Of a stretch of 64,000 nt of DNA, positions 5,388 to 63,661 are shown one piece after another. Under the pieces are notes generated by a model. That model was not told the origin of the DNA. It did no database searches and saw nothing but the letters and a program-made list of their open reading frames with translations. The stretch is taken from NCBI RefSeq assembly GCF_963921235.1, contig NC_086101.1, forward strand, positions 109,802,001 through 109,866,000, read 5' to 3'. This DNA comes from Mobula hypostoma. Lineage: Eukaryota. Both the position numbers and the translations under genes were made by a program. Position 1 is the stretch's first letter; each line of letters begins with the position of its first letter.

Positions 5388-5489
5388 TCAGATTTCTGAG
5401 TAGATGGCTTGCCCGCTGGATCTGGCTGGCTGCTGAGCTGGTGTCGAGATGTACACAGGCTGCAGGATTCCCGGGTCCAACCTGGAGAC
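5388..5489 (-). CDS. Gene A exon 6 (terminal cytoplasmic exon): VSRLDPGILQPVYISTPAQQPARSSGQAIYSEI*
   Basis: Acceptor cattaacttccccgtctgctacag|GTC; phase 0 matches the exon 5 donor; ends in a Tyr motif AIYSEI directly before TGA (5390-5388). Confidence 0.8.
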   Translation of the reverse strand, partial: VSRLDPGILQPVYISTPAQQPARSSGQAIYSEI

Positions 5490-5689
5490 CTGTAGCAGAC
5501 GGGGAAGTTAATGCCCATGCCCAGGGTGTGAATGGGGGAGGAGGGGGGTGTGGTGTTGCTGGTTATGCCAGTGGGGTTCAGGGAACAGGGGGAATCCCAT
5601 GGTTCCAGATTCGAAATTCTAGTTTATTTCTCAAGTATACACATCGTTTGTGTCAACCAGCACATTCCAGGGTGTGTTGGGACCAGTTC

Positions 5690-6010
5690 GCAAGGACGTG
5701 CAAAGGATATTTCCTATAGTTAGGGAGCTTTGGACTGAAGGGCACAGCCTCAGAGTAGAAGGACATCCCTTTAGAATTGAGATGAGGAATTATTTCCTGA
5801 GCCGGAGGGTGATGAATCTGAGGAATTCATTGGCACAGAGGGCTGTAGAGGCTACAGCACTGGATCTATTTAAAGCCAAGGCTGATAGGTTCTTGATTAG
5901 TAAGTGTGTCAAAGGTTATGGGTAAAAGACAGGAGAATGTGGTTGAGAGGGATTAGCAATCAGCCGTGATGGAATGGTTGAGCAGACTCAAAGAGCACAG
6001 TGGCATAAAT
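5690..6010 (+). mobile_element. CR1 LINE 3' fragment
   Basis: TEGHSLRVEGHPFRIEMRNYFLSRRVMNL..AVEA motif. Confidence 0.75.
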
Positions 6011-6779
6011 CTTATGATCACACATTCCAGGACTAACACAGCATGTCTGCCATAACAACACAGAACACAAGTAACAAAATAATAACAGCAAGAAAACAAG
6101 CCCCTTTCCTTCCTACCATCCACTGATATACAGTCCTTTAACCCCAGGACAAGTCTCCAGCGGACACAGACATGGGCCTGCAGATACCAGGCTTTGACCT
6201 CCACAGTGGATTCTTAGAGATATGTAGACTTGGCTCCGGCCCTGATGTTGCCTCAACGGCCAAGAGTCCAGTCTGGGAGCTCTCCATGCACTGGGTGAGG
6301 GGTGGGGGGCATGGTGTGAAGTCAAACACCCAGCGTGTTAACTACCACACTCTCCCATTTGATCCCATCCCTCATACTGATGGATGGGAATGTTCATCCA
6401 CCGCAATTAATGTTATCTTATCTTCCCCATCTGACTCTGGTCTGGGATGCAAGATGGCCCCAGTGAACCATGGTGACATTCTGCAGACCACATACAAACT
6501 TCTAAATATACCTTTTTTGAATTACTCTCATTGCAATCTTTAGCATATATGATTTCCCTTTAAGATTTATTACTAGTACTTCTTTCTTTTCTTTTGTACT
6601 TACACCATCTGTTGTCTCTTGTACAGTGGAAGTTTACCATATTTGATATGGTCTTTCATTAATTCTATTATGTTTCTGGGATTTACTGTCTATGCCACAT
6701 GAAAATGAATCTCAGGGTTGCATGTGGTGACTTTTATGTACTTTGATAATAAATTTACTTTGAACTTTCAATCGTTGAA

Positions 6780-7160
6780 AGGGAACTTCAATCTGTGTAT
6801 TCCCCTGTCTCCCTTCCCTCTTGTTCCATTACCCATTCTGGCTCCCCACCTACCTCTTCTCTTTGCCATGCCCTGGTGCTCTCCTAACTCTCTTTTTCTC
6901 ATTGCCCAGCCTCCTCTCCTATCAGATTCATTCTTCACCAGCCTTTACCCTTTCACACTTATCACCCCCAATTTCTTACTTCATCATCCCTCCCCCACCT
7001 ACCTGGCTTCACACATCACCTTCTAGCTTGTACGACTTCAAGTCCCCCTACCATCATATACAAGCTTCTACCCGCTTCCATTCAGGTCCTGATGAACAGT
7101 CCCAACTCAAAACATTGACTGTTCATTCATTTCAATAGAGCTGCTGTGAGTTTCTCCACA
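6780..7160 (+). mobile_element. Penelope-like element 3' remnant with degenerate hammerhead motif
   Basis: Pyrimidine-rich tract followed by GTCCTGATGAACAG...AAAACATTGACTG at about 7086-7121, the same layout as the intact motifs at 43452 and 50346. Confidence 0.55.
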
Positions 7161-7184
7161 ATTTTGTGTCTGTTACTCCATACC

Positions 7185-9990
7185 TGTTTTGTGATGCCTG
7201 GAGTGTGTGATGGGAAAATGTAGAGGGAGCTACATCCTGTTTCTGACCCTGGGAGAGTGTGATGAGACAGTGTGGAGAGAGCTTCACCCCCACGTCTGAC
7301 CCTGGGTGTGGGTGATGGGAGAGAGTAGAGGGAGTTTCACTATGTTTGACCCTGGCAGTAATTGCTGGGATCTTGTAGAGGGAGCTTTACTCTTTGTCTG
7401 ACCCTGGGAAGGTATGAAGGGACAACGCAGAGGGAGTCTCACTCTGTGTCTTACCCTGGGAGTATATGATGGGACAGTCTAGGGGAAGCTTCACTCTGTG
7501 TTTGACCTTGGATGTATGTGATGGGACAGTGTAGAGGGAGCTTCACTCTGTGTCTGACCCTGGGAGTGTGTGATGGGACAGTGTAGAGGGAGCTTCATCC
7601 TGTGTCTGACCCTGTGACTGTGTGATGGGACAGTATAGAGGGAGCTTCACTCTGTGCCTGACCCTGGGAGTGTGTGATGGGACAGTGTAGAAACAGCTTC
7701 ACTCTGTTACTGTCCATGGAGCTTTCCCTGGTGATGGGACAATATAGAGGAAAGTACGCTCGGTGCCTGATCCTGTTAATGTGTGATGGGACAGGGTAGA
7801 GGGAGCAACACTCTGTGTCTGAACCTATGTGGTATGATGGACATTGTAGAGGGAACTTCTCTCTGTGTCTGAACTAGGGAGTGGTGATGGGACAGAGTAA
7901 ATGGAGTTTTGCTCTATGTCGGACCCTGACCCTGTGATTAATTGATGGGATCATGCAGAGAGAAGTTAACTCCTTATCCGACTCTGGTAATGTGTGAAGG
8001 GAGAACGGAGAGGGAGTTTCACTCTGCTGACCCAGGGATCATGTGATGGGGCAGTGTAGAGGGAGCTTCACTCTGTGTCTGACCCTGGGAGTGTGTGATG
8101 GGACAGTGTAGAGGGAGCTTCACTCTGTGTCTGACCCTGGGAGTGTGTGATGGGACAGGGTAGAGGGAGCTTCACTCTGTGTCTGACCCTGTGAATGTGT
8201 GATGGGACAGTGTAGAGGGAGCTTCACACTGTGTCTGACCCTGGGAGTGTGTGATGGGACAGTGTAGAGGGAGCTTCACTCTGTGTCTGACCCTGGGAGT
8301 GTGTGATGGGACAGTGTAGAGGGAGCTTCACTCTGTGTCTGACCCTGGGAGTGTGTGATGGGACAGTGTAAATGGAACAACAGTCTATGTCTGATTCATT
8401 CTGTGTATGACACAGGGAGTGTGTGATTGGATAGGGTATAGTGTGCTTCACCCTCTGTCTGACCTTGAGAGTGTGTGATGGGAATGTGCAGAAGGAGATT
8501 CACTCTCTATCTCACCAAGGGAGTTGAGGGAGCTTTATGCCATTTGTGACCCTGAGAGTGTGTGATGGGAAATGTAGAGTGGGCATCATTTTTTGTCTGT
8601 GCTTGGGACAATATAGAGGAAGCTACACTTTGTGTCTGACCCAGTGAGTGTGTGATGGGACAGTGTTGAGAAAGTTTCACTCTATATCTGACCCTGCAAG
8701 TCTGTTTTGGGAAAATATAGAGAGTGCTATAATCTGTGTCTGACCGTGGGGAGTGTGATGGACATTGTAGAGGCAGTTTCACGCTGTGTCTGAAGTAACG
8801 AGTATGTGATGGGACAGGACCGAGGTAGTCTCACTCTGTGTTGGACAGTGCAGAGTGTGTAATGGGACAGTGTAGAGGTAGTTTCACTCTGTGTCTGATC
8901 CTGGGAGAGTGTGATGGGATATGGCAGTGGGAGCTTCACTCTGTTTCTGACCCTGTGATTAATTGATGGGATCATGCAGAGAGAAGTTAACTCCTTATCC
9001 GACTCTGGTAATGTGCGAAGGGAGAACGGAGAGGGAGTTTCACACTGTTGACCCAGAGATCGTGTGATGGGATAGTGTAGAGGGAGCTTCACTCTGTGTC
9101 TGATCCTGGGAGTGTGTGATGGGACAGTGTAGAGGAAGTTTAACTCTGTGTCTGACCCTGGGAGTGTGTGATGGGCAAGGTAGAGGGAGCTTCACTCTGT
9201 GTCTGACCCTGTGAATGTGTGATGGGACAGGGTAGAGGGAGCTTCACTCTGTGTCTGATCCTGTGAATGTGTGATGCGACAGTGTAGAGGGAGCTTCACT
9301 CTGTGTCTGACCCTGGGAGTGTGTGATGGGCAAGGTAGAGGGAGCTTCACTCTGTGTCTGACCCTGTGAATGTGTGATGGGACAGGGTAGAAGGAGCTTC
9401 ACTCTGTGTCTGAACCTGGGTGTGTGTGATGGGGCAAGGTGGACGGAGCTTCATTCTGTATCTGACCAGGATGTGTGTTTTGGAACAGTGTAGACAGAGG
9501 TTGACGCTGTGTCTGACCTTGGGTGTACGTGATGGGGCAATGTATGGGAGCATCGCTCCATGTCTGACCTTGGGAGTATGTGATGGAAAAATGTAGAGAG
9601 AACTTCACTCTGTGTCTGTCCCTGGGACTGTGTGATGGGACAATGTAGAGGAAGGTACACTCCATGTCTGATACAAGGAGTGTGAAATGGGAGAGGGTAA
9701 GGTGTGCTTCACTTTGTGTCTGACCCTGGAATTGTGTGAGTAAACAGTGTAGGGGGAGCTTCATTTCATGTCTGTCCCTGGGAGTGTGTGAAGGGACAGT
9801 GTCGAGGAAGCTTCACAATTGTTTGACTCCGGGAGTGTGTAATGGGACAGTGTAGAGGGAGCTTCACTCTGTGTCTGACCCACAGCGTGTGTGTTGAGAC
9901 AGTGTGATGGGAGCTTCACTATGCGTCTGACCCTGGGGGTGCATGATGGGAGCGTGTAGAGGGAGTTTCACTCTGTGCCTGACCCTAGGG
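7185..9990 (+). repeat. 52-bp minisatellite array, about 54 units (intron 5 of gene A)
   Basis: Unit CTGACCCTGGGAGTGTGTGATGGGACAGTGTAGAGGGAGCTTCACTCTGTGT; exact 52-bp spacing at 8235/8287/8339. Confidence 0.95.
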
Positions 9991-10182
9991 AAATTTGGAA
10001 TATTTCAAATAACATTTTGGGCAGAGATGCCTCACAGATGTTTGATGTGATTGCCTGGGAACTCAGTAAGTGCAGCTGTCAAAATGGAAATATTGGGTCG
10101 TTTACTGATGGGAACTGATCCCGAGATTGGGCGGGTAGATGTACTACAAACCAAGGAAGTGTCAGAAGCCTGTCAAACTTAC

Positions 10183-10250
10183 GTTGTCCTCAGCTGACTT
10201 GGAGAAATGGTCAACTCCTTGATTGTTGCTTGGAGATCCTGATAATAGTC
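10183..10250 (-). CDS. Gene A exon 5 (cytoplasmic): (G)LLSGSPSNNQGVDHFSKSAEDN
   Basis: Acceptor ctttctttacag|GA, donor AAC|gtaagt; 68 nt, phase 1 in and phase 0 out, bridges exons 4 and 6 in frame. Confidence 0.75.
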
Positions 10251-10816
10251 CTGTAAAGAAAGTATGCATTTTGATGGACAGGAAGGAGAGCAGGTCGGTG
10301 CAAGACCACTGGGGACGCGTTCTCTCTAGTCTCTCGAACTCAACAGCATACCAGCCAGTCTCCTTGCCTCTTGAAACTTCCCCAGCTCACTCTCTGTCTG
10401 AGAGCGGACAGTTGGTTCCAGGGATGGTGGGCTGTAAGCGTTTCAGCTGAGAGCAGAAAGATCATTAACTTAAACAGAAATTTTTTTTTTAAAAACACAG
10501 AAGGTGGTATGTACATTTTGAATAAAAGCTGCCAGAGGAAGTGGTTGAGGCAAGTATAATAACAAATTCTGGACAGATATGTGGATTGGAAAGGTTTAGA
10601 AGGTTCTGGACCAGTTGGGCTTGGATGGTGCATCGTAGTCAGTATGTATCAGGTGAGCCTGCTGCTGTACTGTATGACTCCAAATGACTCTGAGTAGGCT
10701 TGAGGTTAGGAGACTGAAGGGAGATCTCATTGAAGCTGATCAAGTTCTTCAACGGTTTCACAGGCTGGATTCAGAGAGCACGTCTCTGTTGTCTGTGCTG
10801 TCGGGGATATCTACGT

Positions 10817-11730
10817 TCGGTGGCCATTTCATCAAGTGGTGCCTAATAAAGTGGCCAGAGTGGTGGAACCCAGTGTGATCTTCTGCTGTGGCACATCACG
10901 CGCTTGAAGGTTCGATGTGCTGTGCATTCAGTGATGCGCTTCTGCACACCGCTGTTGTAACGTGTGGTTATCTGAGTTACCGGCATCTTCTCACCTTCCT
11001 GTCAGCAGGAACCAGTCTGGCCATTCTCCTCTCACCTCACCTATTAACAGGACCTTTCTGCCCACACAACTACCGCTCACAGGATGCTTTTACTGTTTCT
11101 CACACCATTCTCTGTAAACCCTAGAGAATGTTAATGCATCAACATCCCCAGAGATCAGCAGTTTCTGAGATACACAAACCATTCTGTCTGGCACAAATGG
11201 TCAAAGTCACTTGAATCCCATTTAGAAAAATAGAGATCTACAGCACATTACAGACCCTTCGGCCCACAATGTTGTGCCAACCATGTAACCTGCTCTAGAA
11301 ACTGCCTAGAATCACCCCACCCTATAGCCCCCTACTTTACTCAGCTCCATGTACCTATCTAAGAGTCTCTTAACAGACCCTATTGTATCCGTCTCTACCA
11401 CCATCGCTGGCAGTGCATTCCACACACTCATCATTCACACACTGATCATTCACACTCATCACACTCGGTACCTATTTCCAGGCACCTTAAAACTGCGCCC
11501 CCTCGTGTTAGCCATTTCAGCCCTGGGAAAAAGCCTCCGGCCATCCACCTGATCACTGTCACTCATCTCTCTTTCCCCATTTTGATGTTTGGTCTGAACA
11601 ACAACTGCTCCTCTTGACCATGTTTGCATGCTTTTATGCATTGGGTTGCTGCCGCAGGATTGGCTGATTAGATATTTGCATTAATGAGCAGGTGGGCAGG
11701 TCTACCTGCTAAAGAGGCCACGGACTGCAG
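10817..11730 (-). mobile_element. Tc1-derived non-autonomous element interrupted by a CR1 3' fragment (about 11225-11530)
   Basis: TIR-like CCTAATAAAGTGGCCA at both ends; internal sequence shared with 34340-34900 and 62735-63285. Confidence 0.7.
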
Positions 11731-12442
11731 ATGCCATAGTTCAGAATCAGGGGTGGGTCATTAGGACTGAGAGAAGGAGAAACAGCTTCACTCTGTGTTC
11801 AGTGAATCCTTGGAATTGTTCCCTCCAGAGGGCTGTGATATATCCATAACAGAGACTGAGGACTTGAAGAAGGTAGAGAGCACATGGGGGCACCAAGAGC
11901 AAAATGCTGGAGGAACGCAGCAGATCAGGCAGCAACTGTGGTGGGAAACAGATGGTCGATGTTTTGAGTCGCGACCCTGCCTCAGGAATCAAGAGATGTT
12001 TCTAGAAAATGGTGCTGATCAAGAAAACCAGCACGGTGGCACAGAGGGAGACCATTCAGCCCATTGGTGCCAGGGCAAGGCTTCCGGTACGATGGCGGCA
12101 TGCTTGCTCGCAGCGGCCTCTCCCGGTTGCAAGTGTGCGTCGTAAACAATTTTCCTGTGATCACAAGGTCCTGTTGGACTTTGGTCATACAAAATAATGC
12201 ACGTCAGGTTGATTGTTTCATTGGTGAGACCGATGTCAGGGGAGGTGCATGACCTTGGTTGTTGCGCAGACCAGGGCCTCACGCTGCGGCAAAGCCTGTT
12301 ACAGCCACCCGGGGGAGGATGTCCCGGGGCAGTGTGGGAGTGAACAGAGTTGCAGCGGGCGTGCGGGAATCTGTGGTGGATTGGAGACTGGCTCTCCCAT
12401 TGGTGCTGTCCCCCAGTGTTCACTCCCTAGAAACAAAATTGG

Positions 12443-46593: not shown

Positions 46594-47060
46594 CGAGGGG
46601 TGCTTGAAAAGTTCGTGGCCTAAGGTAGGAGTCCATTTTAGAAAACCTAGCACATTTATTTTTCAACATAGTCCCCTCCTACATTTACACACTTAGTCCA
46701 GCGGTCGTGGAGCATACGGATCTTGGACCTCCAGAAAGTGTCCACAGATGGGTGATTGATAAATTCGTGGCCTACCGTAGAAGGAGATGAGTTATGAACT
46801 TCAAATTTTCTGCATAATTACTCAAAGCGTTGACCTGCATGTGCATGTAACAAGAGCTGTATAACTCATCTCCTTCTACCTTAGGCTATGAACTTACCAA
46901 TCACCCCTGCTGTGGACACTTTCTGCAGGTCCAAGATCCGTATGCTCCACGACCGCTGGACAAAGTGTGTGAATGTAGGAGGGGACTATGTCGAAAAATA
47001 AATGTACTAAGTTTTCTAAAATGGACTCCTTCTACCTTAATCCCCAAACTTATCAATCAT
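46594..47060. mobile_element. Second copy of the mariner-type palindromic MITE
   Basis: TA-CGAGGGGTGCTTGAAAAGTTCGTGGCCTAAGG start; right TIR truncated at CTTATCAATCATC. Confidence 0.85.
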
Positions 47061-47902
47061 CAAGGGCAGTCCTTCTCACCTAATCTCTAAAATTCCACCC
47101 CTTGGTCAATTGATCCTTGCCGCGAGGTCCTCATCTACTTATTTATTTATTGAGATACGGTGCCGAACAGGCCTTCTGAGCCACCCCAGTTTAACCCTAA
47201 CCTAATCATAGGACAATAACCAATAAACTTGCCAACTGGACTGTGGGAGGAAACTGGAGCACCCAGAGGAAACCCATGCCATTACGGGGAGAACGTACAA
47301 CCTCCTTACAGGCAGCGGCGGGATTTGAACCTGGGTCACTGGTACTGTACAGCGTTGTGCCAACCATGGTGCCACTGTGAATCCACAGGTCCTAGATTCA
47401 GGGTAAAAGGTGAAATATTTAAGAAGAAATCCTTCACTTAGAGGGTACAGACAGTGTGGAATAAGCTGGCCGCAGAAGTGGTGGACTCAATTGCAACATT
47501 AAAGAAGTTTGGATGGGATAGCTATGGAGGGCTACGGTCTGAGAATGGGTCGATGAGAATATGCAATCTAACAGATTCCCTTTGCGTTCAATTGGTCCCT
47601 CTCCCTGGAAGCTGTCGGAAAATGGTGCTGGAGTCCTGGATTTTTGGCAAATTTTCATTGATGCAGTTTAGGGAGTGGATATTGTAGTTCACTTTATGAT
47701 GTGTTTCTGGTTTCTCTTGCTATCTTAGGTGACTTTAACTTGGGGCTGCCTGCAGATAATGAACACTGAGCTGAACTGAATACGCCTGGACTCTTTCAAT
47801 TTTGTGTTTTATATTTTCCATTTATGTTGTTGCCGCTTGTGTGATTTTTTTTTGCACAGTGGGAGTTCGATGTTTTTCTTTGTTTTGTGGCTGTCTGTGA
47901 AT

Positions 47903-48087
47903 NNNNNNNNNNNNNNNNNNNNNNNNNNNNNNNNNNNNNNNNNNNNNNNNNNNNNNNNNNNNNNNNNNNNNNNNNNNNNNNNNNNNNNNNNNNNNNNNNN
48001 NNNNNNNNNNNNNNNNNNNNNNNNNNNNNNNNNNNNNNNNNNNNNNNNNNNNNNNNNNNNNNNNNNNNNNNNNNNNNNNNNNNNNNN
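47903..48087. other. Assembly gap (185 N)
   Basis: Run of N. Confidence 1.
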
Positions 48088-48089
48088 AC

Positions 48090-50110: not shown

Positions 50111-50282
50111 TAGCTTTACTTATCACAGGTACATCGTAACATATGTTTGCATTAAATCAAATCAGCAAAGATTATGCTAGGAGCGACCTGCAAATGTCAC
50201 CATGTTTCCAATGTAGCATGCTCACAACTATTAACCCTAACCACGCAAACAACAGGAATTCTGCAGATGCTGGAAATTCAAG

Positions 50283-50478
50283 CAACACACATCAAAGTTG
50301 CTGGTGAACGCAGCAGGCCAGGCAGCATCTCTAGGAAGAGGTACAGTCGACGTTTCAGGCCGAGACCCTTCATCAGGACCCACACTGACAAAGGGTCTCG
50401 GCCTGAAACGTCGACTGTTCCTCTTCCCAGAGATGCTGCCTGGCCTGCTGCGTTCACCAGCAACTTTGGTGTGTGTTG
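50283..50478. repeat. Near-perfect palindrome (about 93-bp arms) of Penelope-type terminal sequence, containing two hammerhead motifs
   Basis: CAACACACATCAAAGTTGCTGG...CCCTTCATCAG / CTGACAAAGGG...CCAGCAACTTTGGTGTGTGTTG. Confidence 0.9.
50346..50379 (-). ncRNA. Minimal type I hammerhead ribozyme motif
   Basis: GTC-CTGATGA-A-GGGTCTCGGCCT-GAAA-CGTC/GAC. Confidence 0.65.
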
Positions 50479-50965
50479 ATTAACCCTAACCATATGTCTT
50501 TGGAGTGTGGGAGGAAACTAGGGCACCCAGAGGTAACACACAGGGTCACGGGGAGAACGGACAAACACCTCACAGACGGTGACAGGAACTGAACTCCGAT
50601 CTTACAGCTGGCACTGTAGAAGCATTATGCCAACTGCTGTGCCACAAGCGGAAACTTTGACAATTCATCCACTTGGTACTTCAAGTAAAACTTCTGCCTC
50701 AGGAGTAAGGAAAAGAAAGAATGTGCTGACTTTAGTGAGGGCCCAGAGGAGGCTCATGAGAAAATTCCAGGGAATGAAAGGGTTAAGATATGAGGAGGGT
50801 TTGACGGCTCTCAGCATATACATACTGGAGTTTAAAAGAATGAGAAGGATCTCTTAGAAACCTATTGCATACTGAAAGGCCTAGATAGAGTGGATGCGAA
50901 GAGGATGTTTCCTATTGTGGGGGAGTCTAGATCCAGAGGGCACAGCCTCGGGATACAAAGACATC

Positions 50966-53900
50966 TGTAATGGCTTCTCTGTAATGTTAACTGCTGAGGT
51001 AATGGTTTCTCCGTAGCAGCAATGTTTGGGTTATAACTAAAGATAATGGGTCGCTATCCAATGGGAGAAATGTTATTCTTTCTTGTGTGTCTGTTGGTTT
51101 CGCGGGCTTTTGCCAGAAGACACGAGGGGAATGAAGAGAGGAGACACGACTTGAGAGAGTCGGCCGCCCGACCGGGTGGACTCTGTGTGGGAGTCCAGGG
51201 GTTGGTGACGCCCGGAGATCGAATGGTGGATAGAAGATCTTGCTGAGTGAGCTCCAACGATTTGTGCACGGACTGTTTAATAAGATTGGCGCCATTTTCT
51301 TTTATATTTTGTTTCTCTATTAACCACATAGTCAAAGTAAGAGTTATAAATCTTAGTTGTTTAACCGCATATTGTGTATTGTTCCTTATTTCTGGGTACC
51401 GATTTGAAACAGGGGACACAACGCGCAGCATCCACCCAAACGAGATTTATTAAGTTTGGCCGGGGCTGGGGGGGGGGGGGGCGGGTTATCACCCCCCCCC
51501 CGAGATCAAGCCGCTAGGCGAAGCGAGTGTTACAATGCGGGGGCTACGTCCTGGGATTGATTCTGTTGGATGCTGTGTGATTGCCCTGTTTAAATCAGCG
51601 CTGGTGTGCCTCTGTGGGATTGCGGTTAGTAATGCCTGCATGTTGAGTGGGGTGGACATTCGTACCCCGGATGAAGTGTTAATTTGATTTTTGAGTATGG
51701 TTAAAGCGGGTGGAAAAGTTGAAATCATAGCACGAATGTTTGATAAAATGGCGGGCTCAGACCTTGTTCTAGTTCAGACTAGCGCTGATGTAACGGCGGT
51801 GGGACTGCCAGCGTCTTTCGGGGCCCCAGGGGAGGCAGGGCCATGGCCTGACAGGCAGCTGCCGGAATTGAGTTCTGTGGAAGTTGTAGAGCTGAGAACT
51901 GAGATGTCCCGGGTGTTAACAGCAGGTGTGGACCCTCTGTACGATAGGATTGGTAGAGAGGGTCCCCCTCCCAAGGGGACGGAGTACGCAGAGGGCTGCG
52001 GGTGGCCAGGATTCAGCGAGAAAAGGGGCCGGTAGCGTGTGCTATAACTGTGGGGAAGAGGGACACTTCCGGCAGGGATGTGAGTGGCAGGAAGCCCCTT
52101 GGAGAGCGAGCCCATGGGTATCAAAGCAGGGAGAGTCGTTGGGAAAACTTAGAGGAGACCCAGTGGGTGAACGGCCTGGTGTCTCTGGGGGAACACGTTC
52201 CCAGCAATGTACCAAGGAACTCCTGAAAGCAAGAGACCCTATTCCTGAGGGCTTAGTGGGACCACACTCCAGGGTGTCACTACGGATAGAGGGAATCTAT
52301 GCTAAAGCCATACACGACACCAGGTCGCAGGTCAAGTTACTGCACAGTTCGCTTTACAACAGGTATCTGAAGCATTCACCCTTGTTCAGTGCACTGGAGA
52401 TTTGGGGTATCAGTGCTGGTGATTATCCAGACGACGGTTATTGGTCAGTGAAATTGGAGTTCTCGGAGGCCAATGTGTGAGTGTCTGAGGTTCGGGAATT
52501 GTTAGTGCTGGTTGGTCCGGACCTTGTTAAGACGGACGGCATTTCAATTCTGGAGGGGACCAAATCTCGCTTGTGAGGAGGCTCATGGGGGCCTGCAAGG
52601 AGAAGGTGGGTGAGAGCTTTTTGGGGACATTGTCTGTGCACCCAGTGTTTCGAGCTGCTTTTGAGGACGTGTGTGGCAGCATTGGGCCGTGTACCGAATT
52701 TAAACGAGGGACTGGGTGGTTCACCCAATCGAAGCCAATGGTGATAAGGCCGGGGGAAATAGCGCGAGTGATGGGGACCCCCAAATTTCCCGGAGTGCCT
52801 GAGGGTGAAGCCCTCCTAGTGGACACTCCGGGAGACCACGAGGGGAAGTCGAGATTTCCTGCAGGGGTACTGGTGAGGCTTGAATTGCAGAAGCCCTCGG
52901 TTGTACAGGCCAGCAGAGTGGCAGTGATCGTCAGGAACACTACGAAGAGGGAGGCCACTTCCAAGCGAGGGATGCCCCTGGCGCATTTGCTCCCAGTGGC
53001 GGTAATGGCTAATTCACCCGTGAGGCACGCCGGGGAGAAACTATTGGAAAAGGGGGAGAAGTTGACCACTGAGGACACTCCGTTTAGAGAGAGGTTGCGG
53101 CGACTGGCCCCTGCAGACGTGGAAGACATGTGGCAGCATTTGTGCAAGTTGAAGGAAACTGGGATCATCACTGAGTCCCAAGCCCCTGTGCGTCCCCAAT
53201 AGTAGTGGCCTGGAAGAAAAACAGGAAGGTATGCATGTGTGTGGAATATAGGACTCTGAATAGGCGCACCGTCCCTGACCGGTATGTGGTCCCGAGGGTC
53301 GAATTTGGACTTCCGATTGCCGTGTGTACTGCACACAGATGACAGCCGAAAGGATACCCCAGGGCATATTGGGAGCGCCTGCAACCTTCCAGCAAGTCAT
53401 GGAGAAGACGGTGGGGGATATGAACTTGCTTGAGGTGTTGGTGCATTTGGATGATCTCCTAGTATTTGGATCTACCTTGGAAGAACATGAAGCGAGGCTA
53501 CTGCAGGTACTCGCCAGCTCGGAAGCTGAAGGGTTAAGACTTTCCCTGGACAAGTGCCAGGTCTGCCAAAGGCCCCAGACTGTGAGCGTTCTGCACTCAT
53601 TCCTGGGGTTCTGTGGTTATTATCGGAGATTCGTGAAGGACTATGCCAAAGTGAGACACTCCTTGAATCAACTTCAGTGTGGTTACCCTCCCTTGGGGAA
53701 GGGAGGGGGAAAAGGACTGGAGGGTGGAGAATACTTAATCCCATCAGAGCCCTTTGGACAGAGGTGGGATGTAAAAGGTGAGGAGGCTTTTCAGTCACTG
53801 AAGGAGTTGCTGACCCAGGCACCGGTGCTGGCTTTTGTGGACTTCCGATTGCCGTGTGTACTGCACACAGATGATAGCCGAGAAGGTTTAAGGGGCCTCC

Positions 53901-56900
53901 TGTATCAGGATCAGGGCACCAGGTGGAGACCTGTGACGTTTGTCACTCCGAGAGAAATTATTCCATGCACAAGTTGGTATTCCTGGTGTTGAAATGGGCA
54001 GTTGCGGATGAGCTGAGTGACTATCTCTACGGGGCCAAGTTTGGGGTGAGGACGGACAACAACCCCCTAACTCATATCCTGACCTCGGCGAAAATGGATG
54101 CTACAGGCCATTGGTGGTTGGCAGCAGTGTCCGCTGATGATTTCAGCCTGAAGTACCGGCCGGGGAGCCGGAACAGTGATGCAGATGTTTTGTCAGGACG
54201 GGTGCGTGAGGGGCTGGACATAGACGTGGAGTGGAAGAGCGTTTTTGCCCCGGGGTGAAGGTCTTGTGTCAGTTTGCCATCACCAGGAAGGAAGAGGAAG
54301 AGGAGAGGACTGCTGATCCAGAGGATGATGAGCTGGATGTGTGGTACCTGCTGCTCTTCGCAAACTTCCCCTTGATTGAGGAAGAGACTCCTGGCCCTTT
54401 TTCCACTGAGTCAGGTGAGGTGGGAGGGGACTATCTGGGGGCAGCCTGGGTTACCGCAGGACCTTGAAGCAGGACTTGGACACGGGACAGGGGCTCCGAG
54501 TTGCAGGGGAGAATGAGTGATAGTTCGAAAGAGGATTCGGCAAGCAGACCCAAAGTATCCCCAGTAGCATCCGAGCCTGAAGAGTTAGGTGAGGGGGTAT
54601 AGAGGTCTCAGAGAATTCAGAAACCACTGGATAGGGTGGCCTACGTAGCGCCTGGGGAACAGGGCATGATATCTACTGTTTGGGGAGTTATGTCCCTGCT
54701 TTTGCACCTGGATTGGGTTTTGTGTTTGCAGGAAGGGTTGGCGAATTATCTCAACGTCATGAGGACATGACTAAATTTGGTAGGGGGAGAATGTAAGGGC
54801 TTCTCTGTAATGTTAACTGCTGAGATAATGGTTTCTCTGTAGCAGCAATGTTTGGGTTATAACTAGAGATAACAGGTGGATATCCAATGGGAGGAAAGTT
54901 ACTCTTTCTTGTGTGTCTGGAAGCTGTTGGTTTTGTGGACTTTTGCCAGAAGGCGCGAGGGGAATGAAGAGAGGAGATGCAACTTGAGAGTCAGCCGCCC
55001 AACTGGGTGGACTCTGGGGGGTCAGCGATGCCCGGAGGAGATTGAATGGTGGATAGAAGATCTTGCTGAGTGAGCTCCAACGATTTGTGCATGGACTGTT
55101 TAATAAGATTGGCACTTTTTTCTTTTATATCTTGCTTCTTAGGGCTTAATTAGGAAAGGGAAAAAGGATTATGAGAGAAAGCTGGCAGGGAACATAAAAA
55201 CTGACTGTAAAAGCTTTTATAGATAAGTGAAAAGAAAAAGATTGGTTAAGACAAATGTAGGTCTCTTACAGTCAGAAACAGGTGAATTGATCATGGGGAA
55301 TAAGGACATGGCAGACTAATTGAATAACTACTTTGGTTCTGTCTTCACCAAGGAGGACATAAGTAATCTTCCGGAAATAGTAGGGGACCGAGGGTCTAGT
55401 GAGATGGAGGAACTGAGGGAAATACATGTTAGTAGGGAAGTGGTGTTAGGTAAATTGAAGGGATTAAAGGCAGATAAATCCCCAGGGCTAGATGGTCTGC
55501 ATCCCAGAGTGCTTAAGGAAGTAGCCCAAGAAATAGTGGATGTATTAGTGATAATTTTTCAAAACTCTTTAGATTCTGGATTAGTTCCTGAGGATTGGAG
55601 GGTGGCTAATGTAACCCCGCTTTTTAAAAAAGGTGGGAGAGAGAAACTGGGGAATTATAGACTGGTTAGCCTAACATTGATGGTGGAGAAACTGCTAGAG
55701 TCAGTTCTCAAAGATGTGATAACAGCACATTTGGAAAGCGGTGAAATCATCGGACAAAGTCAGCATGGATTTGTGAAAGGAAAATCATGTCTGACGAATC
55801 TCACAGTATTTTTTGAGGATGTAACTAGTAGAGTGGATAGGGGAGAACCAGTGGATGTGGTATATTTGGATTTTCAAAAGGCTTTTGACAAGGTCCCACA
55901 CAGGAGATTAGTGTGCAAACTTAAAGCACACGGTATTGGGGGTATGGTATTGATGTGGATAGGGAATTGGTTGGCAGACAGGAAGCAAAGAGTGGGAATA
56001 AATGGGACCTTTTCAGAATGGCAGGCAGTGACTAGTGGGGTACCGCAAGGCTCAGTGCTGGGACCCCAGTTGTTTACAATATATATTAACGACTTAGATG
56101 AGGGAATTAAATGCAACATCTCCAAGTTTGCGGATGACACAAAGCTGGGCGGCAGTGTTAGCTATGAAGGGGATGCTAAGAGGATGCAGGGTGACTTGGA
56201 TAGGTTAGGTGAGTGGGCAAATTCATGGCAGATGCAATTTAATGTGGATAAATGTGAGGTTATCCACTTTGGTGGCAAGAACAGGAAAACAGAATATTAT
56301 CTGAATGGTGGCCGATTAGGAAAAGGGGAGGTGCAACGAGACCTGGGTGTCATTGTACACCAGTCATTGAAAGTGGGCATGCAGGTACAGCAGGCGGTGA
56401 AAAAGGCGAATGGTATACTGGCATTCGTAGCAAGAGGATTCGAGTACAGGAGCAGTTGTACAAGGCCTTGGTGAGACCACACCTGGAGCACTGTGTGCAG
56501 TTTTAGTCCCCTAATCTGAGGAAAGACATTCTTGCCATAGATGAAGTACAAAGAAGGTTCACCAGATTGATTCCTGGGATGGCAGGACTTTCATATGATG
56601 AAAGACTGGATCGACTAGACTTATACTCGCTGGAATTTAGAAGATTGAGGGGGGATCTTATTGAAACATATAAAATTCTAAAGGGATTGGACAGGCTAGA
56701 TTGTTCCTGATGTTGGGGAAGTCCAGAACGAGGGGTCACAGTTTGAGGATAAAGGGGCAGCCTTTTAGGACCGAGATGAGGAAAAACTTCTTTACACAGA
56801 GAGTGGTGAACCTGTGGAATTCTCTGCCACAGGAAACAGTTGAGGCCAGTTCATTGCCTATATTTAAGAGGGAGTTAGATATGGCCCTTGTGGCTAAAGG

Positions 56901-57225
56901 GATCAGGGGTATGGAGAGAAGGCAGATACAGGGTTCTGAGTTGAATGATCAGCCATGTTCATACTGAATGGCGGTGCAGGCTCGAAAGGCCAAATGGCCT
57001 ACTCCTGCACCTATTTTCTATGTTTCTCTACTAACCACATAGTCAAAGTCTCAATCGTTTAACCGCATATTGTGTACTGTTCGTTATTTCTGGGTACTGA
57101 TTTGAAACAGGGGACACATCATGCAGCATTCACCCAAATGAGGTTTATTAAGTTTGGCCGGGCAGGGGGGTGGGGAGGCGGTTGCCACCCCCGAGATTAA
57201 GCCGCTAGGTGAAGCGAGTGTTATA
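50966..57225 (+). mobile_element. Gypsy LTR retrotransposon 1 (PNMA-like gag family), decayed, inserted in a CR1 3' fragment
   Basis: 5' LTR 50966-51534 (TGTAA..TTACA); degenerate tRNA-Pro PBS; zinc knuckle [14 protein letters not shown]; protease AIHDTRSQ; [13 protein letters not shown]; RNase H LHTDDS and DYLYGAKFGVRTDN; PPT GGTAGGGGGAGAA; 3' LTR 54792-57225 (split); 4-bp TSD CATC/CGTC. Confidence 0.9.
55140..57020 (+). mobile_element. CR1 RT-bearing 3' portion inserted in the 3' LTR of Gypsy 1
   Basis: 384-aa ORF 55320-56474 (DFQKAFDKV, GVPQGSVLGP, FADDTK); LTR sequence resumes at 57021. Confidence 0.9.
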
Positions 57226-57554
57226 CGTCCCTTTAGAACAGAGATGAGGAGGAACTTATTTAGCTAGGAATTGGTGAATCTGTGGAATTCATTGCTACAG
57301 ACAGCAGTGGAGGTCAAGTCACTGGATAAATTTAAAGTAGAGCTTGATAGGTTCCAGATTAGTAAGGGCGTCAATGGTTACAGGGAGAAGGCAGGAGAAT
57401 GGGGTGAGAGGGATAATATTTCAGCCAGGATCAAATGGCAGAGGAGACTCAATGAGTCAAAGGGGTTAATACTGTTCCTGTGTCTTATGAAGGCAAACAA
57501 TTATCTTGTCCTCAGGAATTTTATTTTCTGTTGGTATATTTTCACAGTACCTAG

Positions 57555-60500
57555 TGTAACGGGTTTCTTCTTTCATGTTACTTGCTAAGGCTAATAAAAT
57601 GGCTTCTCTGTAATGTTAACTGATGAGGTAATGTTCTCTGTAGCAGCAAGTTTGGGTTATAATTAGTGATAATGGGACATGTATTCATTTGCTAAAAAAA
57701 TTGGGATAGATGTTATTCTTTCTTGTGTATCTGAAATCTGTTGTTTGCGTGGAACTTGGCGGAGAAGGCGTGAGGAGGATGAAGAGAGAAGACGTGGCTT
57801 GAGGAGACGGTTGCCGGACCCGCTGGGCCTGGGCTCGGGGCGGGAACCCAGAGGCTGACAACAAGCGGAGGAGGATCAGCGAAAGGGAATCCGTGAGCTC
57901 CAACGTTTGTGCACTGGACATGTTTATGAGATTACAGCATTGGCGCCTTTTATTTGTTTTCCTTGTCTTTTGTTTCTCTACTAACCCCATACTTAAATAT
58001 AAAATCTTAATCGTGTAAACGCACATCGTGGACTGAATGTTATTTCGGGTACTGATGTTACACAGGGGACACAACACACAGTATCCACCCAAACAGGAGT
58101 GCTAAAGTTTGGCCGGGTAGAGGGTGCCACCCCCGAGATCATGCCACTAGGCAAAGCGAGTCTTACAATGTGGGGTTACTTGTCCGGGATACGGATTTTT
58201 GTGGGGTGCTGTGTGTTCACCCTGTTTAAATCAGTGCTGGTGTGTCTCTGTGGGATTGTGATTAGACACGTGTGCCCCTGTGGGATTGGGGTGAGTAACG
58301 GGCTGAGTGGGGTGGATATTCGTACCTTAGATGGATTGTTATTTCGATTTTTGAGTATGGTTAAAGCTGATGGTGAATGTGAAATTGTAGAGCAAAAAGT
58401 TGATAAAATGGTGGGCTCAGACCTTGCTTTAGTGCGGGCCAGCGCTGACGTCACAGAGGTGGGATTGCCAGTGTCTATTGGTGCCCTGGGTGAGGCGGGG
58501 CCAGGGGCTGTCCATACTGTCAGGAGGGAGGGGGCAGAGGCGTACGAGACGTGGGCGGAACGGATCCCTCAGTTGTTAGATGACTGGCAGTGCTCGGCTG
58601 AGGAAGAGCGGCAGGGATTGGTTGAAAGTTTGAGTAGGTGGGCTGGTGATGGTGTTCGAACAGTCAGGGCCAATTACCCCATAGTGACAGCGGCCAGTTA
58701 TCTGAAAGCGGGGGAAAATGCGTTTGGTTCCACTGGAAGTAAAATGCAGCACCAGGGGGCTTTCCATACCTGTGTCAGGAGATTGGGGGAAAGTTTTCAG
58801 GGTATCTTCTCTGGCTAGGGGGGGCAGATAAATTGCTTGTGGTGCCAGGGGGATTAGCCCCTCCCTTAGTTGTTCAGCTGATCAGAGAGGTGTCGGTAAA
58901 CTTAATGGAGGTCCAGTGGGGGAACGGCTTGGGGTCTCTGGGGGAACACATTCCCAGCAAAGTACCAAGGAACTCCAGGAAGAAAATGACCCTATTTCTG
59001 AGGGCTTAGTGGGACCACGCTTCAGTGTGTTACGGATGGAGGGAAGCTATGCTAAGGCCTCCTCAACACTGGGGCGCAGGTCAAGTTGCTGTACAGTTCG
59101 TTTTACAACCAGTATTTGAAGTATTTACCCTTGACACTATTCTGGGCACTGGAAATTCGGCATATCAGTGGTGGGGATTATCCAGAAGATGATTATTGGT
59201 CAGCGAAACTGGAGCTCTCGGAGGCCAAGGTGTAGGTGTCTGAGGTTCAGGGATCGTTAGTGCTGATGTGTCTTGACACTGTTGAGACGGGCAGCGTTTC
59301 AATTTTGCAGGGAACCCACACCCCGCTGGTGAGGAGGTGCATGGGGGCCTGCCAGGAGGAGGTGGGTGAGAGCTGTCTGGGGGCATTATCTGTGCACCCA
59401 GTGTTTCGAGCTGCTTGTGAGGATGTGCATAGCAGCAATTGGGCCAGGTACCGAACTTAAGTAAGATCCGATGGTGGTACGGCACGGGTGAAGTAGCTGA
59501 GGGTGAGACCCTCTTAGTGGATGCTCCGACATACCACGCGGGGGGGGGGGGGGGGAGTTGACCACTGAAGACACCTCGGTGAGAGAGAGGTTGCGGCGAC
59601 TGGCCCCTGCAGACATGGAGGATGCAGGCAGCATGTGTGTGGGTTATAGGACCCTGAACAGGGGCACCGTCCCTGACCAGTATGTGGTCCCGAGGGTGGA
59701 AGACGCGCTGGTCTGTCTGAGAGGTGTGAAGTGGTTTAATGTGCGGGATCTGAGGAGTGGATGTTGCCAGATCCTGAGGCTGACAAGGAAAAGACGGCCG
59801 TTATAAGTCCCCTGGGATTCCTCCAATCCGAAAAGATGTTCCAGGGCATATCCGGAGCCCTTGCAACTTTCCAGCGGGGCATGAAGAAGACGGTGGAGGA
59901 TGCGGAATCATTTGGAGTTTTGGTGTATTTGGATGATCTCCTAGTATTTGGATCTGCCTCGGAAGAATATGAAGCGAGGCTGTTGCACGAGCGGCTGAGA
60001 ACTAAAGAGTTAAAGCTTTCGCTGGACACATGCCAGGTCTGGCGAAGGTCACAGCTCGTGAGTGACTGGCTCTACGGGATCAAGTTTGAAGTGAAGACGG
60101 AGAGACAGAATTCCCAGCAGAGACTGGAGAAAGTGATCCAGAACAAGTTGGAAGACTTGCAAGTTGGGGAAGACAAAGAAAGCTGTCTGACTAAGGCCAA
60201 CAGAAAATCGAGAGCCCAGAGAGGGAGGTTTGACTACACTTCCGAGGAGGTGAAGCAATTGAGGACAGATCTCAAAAGAGGGAAGTGGAAGCTTGAAGGG
60301 AACGTGAAGATGACCACTGACAGTTTAAATGAAGTGGAAAACCTGAAAGTTGACCTGGAAGAAGTCATTAGTTAGAAAAAGCTGGGGATAAGTTCAGTGA
60401 ACACTAAACTGGAGGCTGTACCAATCTTAACTGCTGCTTTTCAGGTCGGGGTGGAAGAAGCCGATGGAGTAACTGTGTCCCAGATTGAGATGGCCAAGAA

Positions 60501-61274
60501 GCATTAGTCAGAACTGCTGAGACTGTGGCGAGAGTTGGAGGAGTCCAAGAAGAAGCTGTCGTCTGGATTACAGGAGGCTGAAGCAGTCCAGGCCAAGTGC
60601 TCCAGCGTGGAGAGAACAAACCAGCAGCTACCGATCGAGGAAAAGGGGAAGAATACAGATTCGACGGATGGTGAGATGGAGGTGTGGTACATGCTGCCTT
60701 TCGCAAACTTCCCCTTGTTGGATGAAGAGGCTCCTGGCTCTTCTCCCGCTGAGCCAGGTGAGGTGGGGGGGAATAGCTGTGGGCAGCCTGGGTTACTGCA
60801 GGACCCTGAAGGAGAAACAGGGTGCCTGGACACAGGACAGGAGGCTCCGGGTTGTAGTGGGGGCATGAGTGAGAGATTGAGAGAGGATTTGGCAAGGAGA
60901 CCCGAGGTATCCCCAGTAGAGTCCGAGCCTGAAGGGTTTAGGTGAGGGGGTACGGAGGTCTCGGAAGATTAGGAAACTCCCAGATAAGTTGGCCTATGTA
61001 GTGCCTGGGGAACAGGGCATGAGGTCTACTGTTTGGGGAGCAATGTCACTGTTTGTACCTGGATTGGGTTTTTGTGTCTGCAGGAAGGGTTGATGAGTTA
61101 TTTAAAAGTCATGAGGACATGACTAAATTTGGTAGGGGGAGAGTGTTATTTCGGGGTACTGATGTTACACAGGGGACACAACATGCAGCACCCACCCAAA
61201 CAAGAGTGCTAAAGTTTGGCTGGGTAGTGGGCACCACCTCCGAGATCATGCCACTAGATGCAATGAGTCTTACA
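57555..61274 (+). mobile_element. Gypsy LTR retrotransposon 2 (same family), internally deleted
   Basis: 5' LTR 57555-58167; PBS-like TGGGGTTACTTGTCCGGGAT; PNMA-like gag EAYETWAE..LLDDWQCS..LVESL; [12 protein letters not shown]; PPT 61131-61142; partial 3' LTR 61143-61274; TSD CTAG/CTTG. Confidence 0.85.
60100..60640 (+). pseudogene. Captured myosin heavy-chain rod fragments (MYH16-like) inside Gypsy 2
   Basis: [61 protein letters not shown]; EEADGVTVSQIEMAKKH*SELLRLWRELEE; KKKLSSGLQEAEAVQAKCSSVERT. These match recalled sarcomeric MYH S2/LMM motifs. Confidence 0.85.
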
Positions 61275-61390
61275 CTTGATATGCACTTAACACAATGATA
61301 TAATTCAGATGGCACAATATACCAAGTGTTGCAAGACTCCAACTTCACAGGCTGGAGAGAAACTACACAGACTTCCTCTAGATCTCCCGA

Positions 61391-61488
61391 TTATGACAGA
61401 GTCATCACACAGCCGAACAGAACCACCAGTAATAAGGTTAGTATGTAGTGACTGTGAATCAGAGTTGGTTCTGTGCCGCTCCAGGTCT
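61391..61488 (-). CDS. Gene B terminal exon, GPI-signal-like: (E)TWSGTEPTLIHSHYILTLLLVVLFGCVMTLS*
   Basis: Strong acceptor tttttcttctctccaacag|AG; phase 1 matches the V exon donor; small residues SGT, spacer, hydrophobic C-terminus, then TAA with no cytoplasmic tail. Confidence 0.8.
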
Positions 61489-62734
61489 CTGTTGGAGAGA
61501 AGAAAAACTGGATGAAAACTTGGGCACTTTGAATTCTGAGTTCCCCATTTCCACTCTACCCACTTACAGAGAAACGACGCAAAGCATGGCTTTATCTCCT
61601 GGAGAGCACCCCAGTGCCCCCCCCCCAATTAGTCACCACGAATCTTTTGACCCCTCCCACTCTGCTATCTATTCCCCCCCACTCCCCAAACATGTGCTGA
61701 TGTACCGGTCAAACCAGTCCCTGTAAGAACAGAAAAAAATAGGAGCAAGAGTTGGCCAGCTGGCCTACTATTCAATTAGATCATCGACTCCGCTCCACCT
61801 ACCTTCCTCTTCCACATAACTTAATTTAGGCAAAAATCTACCTAACTGTGGCTTAAATATATTTAATGGGGTAGCCTCTACTGATTCCTGCACAAAAGGG
61901 CACAGCCTCAGGATAGAGGGGCGCCCTTTCAAAACAAAGATGTGGAGAAATTTCTTTAGCCAAAGGGTGGCAAATCTGTGGAATTTGTTGCCACATGCAG
62001 CTGTGGTGGCCAGGTTGTTGGGTTTATTTAAGGTGGAGATTGATAGGTTCTTGATTGGACATAGCATCAAAGGTTATGGGGAGAAGGCTTGGAAATGGGG
62101 TTGAGGAGGAGGGGGAGAAAAAGGATCAGCCTTGACTGGAGGCCAGAGCAGACTCGATGGACAAGATGGCCTAATTCTGCTCCTATGTCTTATGGAGAAT
62201 GATCACTATTGCCAATACTACCATCGGGGTGGGGTGGGGGGGAAGAGGTATAACAGCTGGAAGACTCACACACAACATTTTAGAAACAGCTTCTTCTATT
62301 ACACGCGGAAACAGAATTAGGCCATTCAGCCCATTGGGTCTGCTCCAACATTCGATCATGGCTGATTTACTATCCCTCTAAACTTCTGCCTTCATCCCCC
62401 TAATCTTTGACACCCTAATTAATCAAGAAACTACCAACCTCCTCTTTAAATACACCCAATGACTTGATCTCCACTGCTGTCCATGGCAATGAATTCCAGA
62501 TTCACCAGCTTCCGGCTAAAGAAATTCCTCCTCATCTCTGTTGAGAAGAGACATCTTCCCTGTCATCAGATTTCTGAATGGTCGATGAACCCTTAACACC
62601 ACCTGACTATTCCTCTTTCTGCACTAGTTATTTATCTACTTATCTATTTATTTATAATTTTTTTTATTGGAACTCACAGTATTTTTTTGTCTTACACTAC
62701 ACTGCTGCTGCAAAACAACATACTTTCTGACATT

Positions 62735-63285
62735 CATTCTGTGGCCATTTTATTAGGTATTTGCTCATTAATGCAAATGTCTAATTGGCCAATCATGTGG
62801 CAGCAACTCTATGCACAAAAGCATACAAACATGGTCAAGAGGTTCAGTTGTTCAGACCAATCATCAGAATGGGAAAGAAATGTGATCTAAGTGACTTTGG
62901 CTGTGGAATGACTGTTGGTTTCAGACAGGGTGGTTTGAGTGTCTCAGAAACTGCTGACCTCCTGGGATTTTCACACATAGCAGTTCCTAGACTTTACAGA
63001 GGATGGTATGAAAAACACACAGAAGAACAACCAGTGAGCGGCAGTTCTGTGGGGTGAACACGCCTTGTTAATGACAGAGGTCAGAGTAGAATGGTCAGAC
63101 TGATTCAAGCTGACAGGAAGGTGACAGTAACTCAAATAACCACATGTTACAACAGTGTTGTGCAGAAGAGCATCTCTGAATGCACAACACGTTGAACCTT
63201 GAAGTGGATGGGCTCCAGGAGCAGAAGACCACAAACTTAATAAGGTGGCAACAAGAGGCACCTAATAGAGTGGCCACTGAGTGAA
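62735..63285 (+). mobile_element. Tc1-derived non-autonomous element
   Basis: MGKKCDLSDFGCGMTVG..SVSETADLLGF; TIRs GTGGCCATTTTATTAGG and CCTAATAGAGTGGCCACTGAGTG. Confidence 0.85.
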
Positions 63286-63334
63286 TGCCAGTGATCATAA
63301 ACCCGATTCTGAAGAAAAGACTATTCCAAGTTAC

Positions 63335-63661
63335 CTGCAACGATGACATTTGAGACCGCACAGCATTCTTGTTTGGAGGCGGAATCTTTGAAGCAACTTG
63401 TGTAGTTTCCTGCTTGGGAAGTTGTGATGTTTTTTAGCAGCAGAGTAGCATTTCCACTTGCATAGCTGGCCAAAACACCAGGGATCTCTTTTACAGGTGG
63501 CTCCTGGCCAATGCTCATGGTAGTAATCAAGTTTCTGCCTTGCATCCAGGTTAGGTGTAGATTAGATGTAAAACATTTCAGATTGTGGGAAAAGTGGAGG
63601 ATTAGATCTTCCCCTGCCCTTACTGTGACCTCTGTGGAGCTTGCCCAGACATCTCTTTCAC
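63335..63661 (-). CDS. Gene B Ig V-set exon with non-canonical cysteines
   Basis: (G)ERDVWASSTEVTVRAGEDLILHFSHNLKCF..LHLTWMQG..GNATLLLKNITTSQAGNYTSCFKDSASKQECCAVSNVIVA. Acceptor ctttcatccttag|GT, donor GCAG|gtaact; 327 nt, phase 1-1. Confidence 0.85.

Follow-up and report, generated by a model that had tools for sequence, protein, structure and literature searches.

A candidate CD28H-like receptor gene in tandem with a predicted B7/butyrophilin-like gene in the ray Mobula hypostoma

The CD28 family numbers nine members in the 2024 survey by Quiniou et al. (PMC11599192), and its receptors mainly bind B7-family proteins. In that survey, CD28H, HL1 and HL2 share the loop motif YxC[EKQN]xxxEIP[PALV][PFL], the mark of this group being a Glu five residues past the Cys and then x-P, and CD28HL3 has the loop YxCxxxxx[IAVL]P together with a tail carrying an immunoreceptor tyrosine-based inhibitory motif (ITIM) and switch motif (ITSM) pair, [IV]xYxxL ... 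V[TL]YxxV, the second of which reads V[TL]YS[ED][VI] (for example VTYSEV, VLYSDI and VLYSEI) (PMC11599192). CD28HL3 lies in synteny with prkab1b, pla2g1b and tmem233; the survey reported no copy of it in cartilaginous fish, and describes CD28HL2 as lost in rays (PMC11599192). Here we analyze two neighboring genes of the immunoglobulin superfamily (IgSF), which we call gene A and gene B, in a stretch of 64,000 nucleotides from the devil ray Mobula hypostoma (contig NC_086101.1, positions 109,802,001 to 109,866,000; hereafter the window). The explanation that we prefer, and regard as likely from the motifs and alignments set out below, is that gene A encodes a CD28/CTLA-4-family receptor of the CD28H-like subgroup, that the window holds the 3′ part of a gene B encoding a glycosylphosphatidylinositol (GPI)-anchored protein with two immunoglobulin (Ig) domains, and that the two are separate genes in tandem.

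Both genes are on the minus strand, head-to-tail and in the order B then A (Table 1), and both are separate genes that are already annotated and unnamed. The distance from the stop codon of gene B at 61391 to the ATG of gene A (37002 in RefSeq, or 36933) is ~24.4 kb, a figure that includes a gap of 185 N of estimated length only, so that the intergenic distance is uncertain. These coordinates confirm the shared strand and the spacing of about 24 kb given in an earlier reading of the window from its letters alone (the original prediction), which had also recognized only repeats between the two genes. This second observation stands as well, since tblastn located no further Ig exon between genes A and B, and the long open reading frames (ORFs) of the interval carry, by Pfam, retroelement domains alone (RVT_1, RT_RNaseH_2, zf-CCHC and PNMA-like gag).

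Table 1. Positions of the exons and other features of the gene A and gene B locus in the window, and of the gene A orthologue in the Heptranchias perlo locus (L002; CM068671.1).
Feature	Position	Strand	Details
Gene A	37002..5388	minus	100% match to RefSeq LOC134347327 of Mobula hypostoma
Gene A leader exon	36870..37002	minus	ends phase 1 at 36870, GT donor; RefSeq ATG 37002, alternative ATG 36933
Gene A V-J-type Ig domain exon	32116..32475	minus	360 nt, phase 1-1; starts after AG
Gene A stalk and transmembrane (TM) exon	28659..28781	minus	123 nt, phase 1-1
Gene A cassette exon	13064..13141	minus	78 nt, phase 1-1; AGNLELPTVSTSALLIQTGEYQIRPE
Gene A cytoplasmic exon	10183..10250	minus	68 nt, phase 1 to 0; GLLSGSPSNNQGVDHFSKSAEDN
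Gene A last coding exon	5388..5489	minus	VSRLDPGILQPVYISTPAQQPARSSGQAIYSEI*, TGA stop; AIYS[E/Q]I tyrosine motif
Gene B second Ig-like domain exon	63335..63661	minus	327 nt, AG acceptor, GT donor, phase 1-1
Gene B terminal exon with stop	61391..61488	minus	E-TWSGTEPTLIHSHYILTLLLVVLFGCVMTLS*; tblastn 78% to Hypanus C-terminus
Intergenic interval	37003..61390	.	LINE and LTR-retroelement fragments; contains N gap 47903-48087
Assembly gap	28906..29380	.	within gene A V-to-TM intron, 125 nt upstream of TM exon acceptor; non-coding
Heptranchias gene A orthologue, leader	L002 27777-27851		
Heptranchias gene A orthologue, V exon	L002 ~30402-30764		44% identity to Mobula
Heptranchias gene A orthologue, TM exon	L002 near 31943		
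Heptranchias gene A orthologue, distal exon	L002		encodes ...DAIYSQI

Gene A exons were placed by tblastn with the Hypanus sabinus orthologue (LOC132396365) and the Mobula RefSeq protein, and the splice sites were read directly. All junctions are GT-AG and join into one continuous ORF, which encodes a leader, one V-J-type Ig domain, a stalk, a TM segment and a tyrosine-bearing tail. The five-exon form of 238 residues is colinear with Hypanus isoform X1, and the six-exon model has 287 amino acids; the Mobula RefSeq model includes the 78-nt cassette, which contains GEYQI, whereas Hypanus isoform X1 lacks it, and the frame is preserved whether the cassette is included or skipped. The RefSeq start of LOC134347327 places 23 hydrophilic residues ahead of the signal peptide. 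We prefer the start at 36933, where the protein opens directly with its signal peptide (MTWVAFLW...), because the Hypanus protein begins MTWV, and the RefSeq start is probably too far upstream. The V exon matches the Pfam V-set domain with 40.5 bits and is 68% identical to its Hypanus counterpart, and the domain that it encodes has an additional Cys pair (C-x6-C), an F-G loop with EKPAPV and a G strand with GYGNGT. The stalk (TEPEEASAESSRVLQT) is free of Cys, and the TM segment is free of charged residues.

We took the motifs by which CD28-family members are recognized from the survey cited above (PMC11599192), and compared gene A with each of them. Gene A has the layout of the family (a single extracellular V domain, a stalk, a TM segment and a cytoplasmic tail), its F-G loop keeps the proline motif P-x-P in Mobula, Hypanus and Heptranchias, and the GxG bulge of the G strand is present as G-[YSQ]-G-[ND]-G-T in all three. 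The F-G loop (YYCEIQVEKPAPVRRGYGNGT) aligns with the MYPPPY loop of CTLA-4 without a gap, and we take from this alignment that EKPAPV occupies the register of the B7-binding loop. When a 31-residue F-G segment was searched against the whole PDB, 19 of 20 matches were CTLA-4 (gapless alignment YYCEIQVEKPAPVRRGYGNGTALDVTEPE), one of these being 4n8p, which is deposited as an “uncharacterized protein” but has MYPPPY; with a 48-residue segment covering the F strand, F-G loop and G strand, CTLA-4 was the best natural non-antibody match. In addition, VSQSP, the extra C-x6-7-C, ISxLxIRNxExKD, YYC, E-K-P-x-P (with A, V or L at the variable position), GxG[ND]GT and the tail motif AIYS[EQ]I are common to gene A of the three elasmobranchs; this conservation is an argument that both the loop and the tyrosine motif are functional.

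The likeness to individual branches of the family can be followed motif by motif. With CTLA-4 and CD28, gene A shares the gapless F strand, F-G loop and G strand, the GxGNGT motif, the domain end [D/E]PE and the exon layout of leader, V, TM and cytoplasmic exons; it differs from the CD28/CTLA-4/ICOS core in having no stalk cysteine, no YxxxxT in the TM segment and no YxxM in the tail, and from CTLA-4 in its E-K-P-A-P against M-Y-P-P-P. With the CD28H-like subgroup (CD28H/TMIGD2 and CD28HL1-3), it shares the single V domain with GxG in the G strand, YxC followed by four residues and E-x-P-[A/V/L]-P, and a TM segment without a dimerization motif, and the loops of shark CD28HL2 (VEIPAPIRRASGEG) and of HL1 (IEIPAPVRKSGS) are very close to that of gene A (VEKPAPVRRGYGNG). 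Its tail motif AIYSEI resembles the core of the CD28HL3 motif V[TL]YS[ED][VI], whereas the YxNx of CD28H and HL2 and the Y[ED]SF of HL1 are both missing. The loop also departs from that of CD28HL3 in reading K-P, not [IAVL]-P, and the CD28HL synteny markers were not seen around gene A within the 64-kb window. The CD28 locus is a three-gene cluster, and no CD28-like neighbor of gene A is present within the window, which covers ~5 kb downstream of the gene. On these motifs, gene A is a predicted new or unrecognized member of the CD28H-like branch. If so, its proline-bearing loop (EKPAP) would contact a B7-type ligand on another cell, and the conserved tyrosine of AIYS[E/Q]I would then be phosphorylated and recruit an SH2 protein; by analogy with the proposal made for the similar CD28HL3 motif, an inhibitory phosphatase or a SAP-type adaptor would be the most likely candidate.

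For gene B, the window contains an Ig exon and a terminal exon. The original prediction took the former for the V exon, a call that orthologue alignment overturns: in an exhaustive search, this exon is 73% identical to residues 141-247 of the 280 residues of Hypanus XP_059831128 and 53% identical to residues 221-326 of Pristis LOC127586520, with a weaker match in Heptranchias XP_067828262. Since it maps to domain 2 of orthologues with two Ig domains, we regard it as the exon of the second, membrane-proximal domain; on its own it scores just 16 bits against Pfam V-set. The orthologues have a leader, then a V domain and the second Ig domain, and end with a short hydrophobic C-terminus; the leader and true V exon of Mobula gene B lie beyond base 64000, so that the window holds the 3′ part of the gene. 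The Pristis V-to-Ig2 intron measures ~10 kb. An in-frame ATG directly upstream of the Ig2 exon (MGMLLYSYVFLSSLG, 63703..63662, minus strand) was considered as a leader and rejected as intronic, since the orthologues continue into the V domain and the AG acceptor fits ...DPG|ERDVW.

A profile of gene B orthologues searched against the PDB scored best with CD276/B7-H3 (2.1e-14), BTN2A1 (1e-08), BTN3A and MOG, and also matched JAML and CAR; the V domain behind this B7-H3/butyrophilin likeness is that of the orthologues, the Mobula V exon being outside the window. Weaker library matches to the Mobula exon itself are named CD276-like, VTCN1-like or butyrophilin, and domain 2 matches V/I-type domains (CEACAM, titin, VEGFR2 and the V2 domain of B7-H3). 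Gene B therefore resembles the B7 family and butyrophilins (CD276/B7-H3, VTCN1/B7-H4, BTN2A1, BTN3A) through the N-terminal V domain of its orthologues, and differs from the B7 family in its V/I-like second domain; the RefSeq name of the Hypanus orthologue is CXADR homolog. The C-terminus (WSG-TEPTLIHSHY-ILTLLLVVLFGCVMTLS*) has small residues (S, G) and, after a short spacer, ends in a hydrophobic stretch that no cytoplasmic residues follow, and by inspection this GPI-type ending is kept in Hypanus, Pristis and Heptranchias, from which we infer that the product may be GPI-anchored. B7-H4 has been described as GPI-linked, with a similar hydrophobic C-terminus and almost no tail. We class gene B as a putative B7/butyrophilin-like protein, and not a classical V-C B7; the exhaustive search found no clear orthologues outside elasmobranchs. 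As a separate observation on domain 2, the Mobula codon at 63389-63391 (minus strand) changes NYTCCF/QYQCCL of the other three species to NYTSCF, with the loss of one conserved cysteine, and the canonical Cys of the B strand is absent in Mobula and Hypanus and kept in Heptranchias.

The pair is also found in a shark. In Heptranchias perlo, the gene B orthologue is followed by the gene A orthologue ~9 kb downstream on the same strand (Table 1); the L002 listing leaves the latter without a separate gene model. Because this order is found in both Mobula and a hexanchiform shark, it predates the ray-shark split. In Hypanus sabinus, orthologues of both genes are on one 182-Mb record. The linkage proposed by the original prediction is accordingly borne out in Heptranchias, in order and strand, and is not seen in Pristis pectinata (L001; CM019891.1), where the 10 kb downstream of gene B contain no gene A exon. 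On the other side of the Pristis gene B orthologue, 7 kb upstream, is a SPRY/SOCS-box gene (L001 383-2620, minus strand), with PDB matches to SPSB1 and SPSB4 about equally and to SPSB2 at a lower level, and this gene was not seen within 10 kb in Heptranchias. The RefSeq annotation of Heptranchias also contains an isoform X1, with three transcript accessions, that joins exons of the gene B orthologue to the acceptor of the gene A V exon by way of a 60-nt exon (L002 25647-25706) ending in phase 2, and in which the V exon (30402-30492) is consequently read in a shifted frame and meets a stop after 29 codons. No Mobula counterpart of this bridging exon was found; shared repeats alone matched.

Several observations weigh against the reading of a CD28H-like receptor beside a GPI-anchored B7/butyrophilin-like gene. 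In gene A, the E-I-P signature of CD28H, HL1 and HL2 reads E-K-P, with Lys for Ile in all three elasmobranch sequences; the [IV]xYxxL ITIM, the first motif of the CD28HL3 tail, is absent, with the non-canonical PVYIST in its place; and AIYSEI has Ala where ITIM and ITSM motifs have S, I, V, L or T. The extra Cys pair of CTLA-4 and CD28 is much wider than the C-x6-C of gene A. An AlphaFold model of the V domain built from three sequences reached a pLDDT of 31, and the whole V domain scores best in the PDB with antibody and T-cell receptor (TCR) V domains. On the side of gene B, domain 2 is not a B7-type constant domain, the orthologue model is moderately confident (pLDDT 57 overall, mostly 70-88 in domain 2), and Foldseek with this model places JAML and CD226 first at a low TM-score of ~0.3; these share a tandem of two V-like domains with gene B, but are transmembrane signaling receptors, in contrast to the predicted GPI anchor. 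The absence of a gene A exon from the 10 kb downstream of gene B in Pristis belongs here too. A rival reading would make gene A some other single-Ig receptor of V-J type (NKp30-, CD7-, CD79- or NITR-like) with a convergent loop. Such an origin would agree with the best whole-domain scores, which are to Ig light-chain and TCR alpha V domains, with the GxGxGT of the G strand, which is common to many V-J receptors, with the inexact E-I-P motif, and with the N-terminal VSQSPP...CNFS, which we take to resemble that of NKp30. Whole-domain searches are, however, swamped by antibodies and TCRs, so that they are uninformative for family and show just a V-J-type domain, and when the F-G segment is searched, CTLA-4 is returned nearly exclusively, with no NKp30, CD7, CD8 or CD79 chain. 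The E-x-P-x-P register after YxC and four residues fits the CD28H-like group, and the TM segment has no charged residue of the kind used by NKp30. We consider an origin outside the CD28 family improbable, and retain the CD28H-like assignment of gene A. The analogies of CD7/SECTM1 and NKp30/B7H6 were dropped on the same lack of such chains in the F-G segment searches, and our literature search returned no analogues of either in sharks. A PD-1 identity, suggested by the five-exon layout and a DCR motif, was likewise rejected, as PD-1 has no proline loop and its tails read VDYGLV/TEYATI.

Whether the two products act together is a separate question. The families involved make a receptor-ligand pairing of A and B plausible, as the known partners of CD28-family receptors are B7-family proteins (PMC11599192). 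Gene A retains the P-x-P loop in the B7-binding register, the V domain of the gene B orthologues is B7-H3/butyrophilin-like and their C-terminus is of GPI type, and a ray and a hexanchiform shark agree in the order and orientation of the two genes. Against this, gene B does not have the usual V-C architecture and is without gene A within 10 kb in Pristis. Much microsynteny is retained in elasmobranch genomes for no functional reason, and microsynteny alone does not show functional coupling of the two genes; the known CD28-family/B7 pairs of mammals are unlinked. On this balance it is rather unlikely that receptor A has protein B as its physiological ligand, whether in trans or in cis, with their adjacency maintained by selection, and slightly more doubtful still is the fuller proposal of an ancient cis-linked co-signaling pair, in which a CD28H-like receptor, possibly CD28HL3, and its own GPI-anchored B7/butyrophilin-like ligand would have been adjacent since before the ray-shark split. 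The original prediction had likened the locus to CD2/CD58 and CD244/CD48, an analogy that serves as a concept, a receptor gene close to a GPI-capable two-Ig gene, and does not extend to the proteins, neither of which resembles the CD2/SLAM family: gene A is CD28-like, the CD2/SLAM V domain has no canonical disulfide whereas the V domain of the gene B orthologue has both Cys (C37 and C103 of P0028), and no CD2, CD48 or CD58 chain is among the 60 PDB matches listed for the gene B orthologue profile. The same prediction had raised a chimeric receptor with two Ig domains, made by splicing gene B into gene A, on the grounds that the donor at 63335 and the acceptor at 32475 are both phase 1. Joined directly, they do give a single open frame (...NVIVA-G-YQGEILVSQ...) through to the gene A stop, the phases at the corresponding Heptranchias junction match as well, and Heptranchias isoform X1 uses the gene A V-exon acceptor, from which read-through transcription is plausible. 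Phase 1-1 is the general rule for IgSF exons, and most domain-exon junctions that we mapped in genes A and B are phase 1, so that nearly any joining of Ig or TM exons at this locus would stay in frame; the compatibility is therefore no evidence for a chimera, being generic to Ig exons and not above chance, and since 63661..63335 encodes domain 2, the product would carry three Ig domains, not two. In addition, the sole read-through model found, isoform X1, is frame-shifted, a separate gene A leader exon, with its ATG and signal peptide, is conserved in three species, and the Mobula and Hypanus RefSeq models hold genes A and B apart. A functional chimeric receptor is unlikely, and a conjoined gene in which read-through from B, with its Ig2 exon spliced to the V exon of A, yields a working multi-Ig TM receptor is in our view highly improbable. 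We interpret isoform X1 as a gene model that has recorded run-on transcription, and the in-frame join as a by-product of the phase-1 rule and not a designed product.

The presence of gene A in two rays and one shark bears on the history of the family, since it fits no listed elasmobranch CD28-family member cleanly, and would either fill a reported gap (CD28HL3 in cartilaginous fish, CD28HL2 in rays) or add a member. Its conserved B7/butyrophilin-like neighbor is a cheap and testable candidate ligand. Should A and B bind, the locus would be a rare side-by-side encoding of a CD28-family receptor and a B7-type ligand, with a bearing on the early linkage of co-signaling genes; a true pairing would mean that a primordial receptor-ligand linkage has been preserved, and would name a ligand for an orphan CD28-family branch. 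Should they not bind, they would be one more uncharacterized IgSF gene pair.

The window has a GC content of 45.6% and an observed/expected CpG ratio of 0.35, and scans for Rfam families and tRNAs were empty. Two runs of N are present (28906-29380 and 47903-48087), neither of which reaches coding sequence, so that distances alone are uncertain; the first hides no coding sequence, as the exons to its left and right are phase 1 and follow the Hypanus orthologue colinearly without the loss of a residue, and the second is intergenic. Repeats are found within gene A as well as between the genes. A 52-bp satellite occupies three intervals in gene A introns (7197-9991, 13910-14118 and 28366-28473), its main array having ~53 copies with higher-order periods of 103 and 155, and its minus-strand translation yields repetitive ...PITHSQGQTQSEAPSTLSHHTLPGSDT... 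ORFs. The intron between the TM and cytoplasmic exons holds, in the same orientation as gene A, a long interspersed nuclear element (LINE) ORF2 of 879 uninterrupted codons (24710-27346, minus strand) encoding an endonuclease and a reverse transcriptase (RT), with zf-RVT and RT fragments just downstream (20379-24236). Between the genes, a long terminal repeat (LTR)-retroelement family is represented by two decayed copies in the same orientation (51900-54000 and 58000-60400, plus strand), both with gag (zinc knuckle or PNMA-like domain) followed by RT and RNase H. Finally, an interspersed repeat at 62785-63300 starts ~40 nt downstream of the gene B Ig2 donor and has a second copy in a gene A intron (10879-11121); it recalls a Tc1-type DNA transposon, for which Pfam gives just HTH_23 (E = 0.12).

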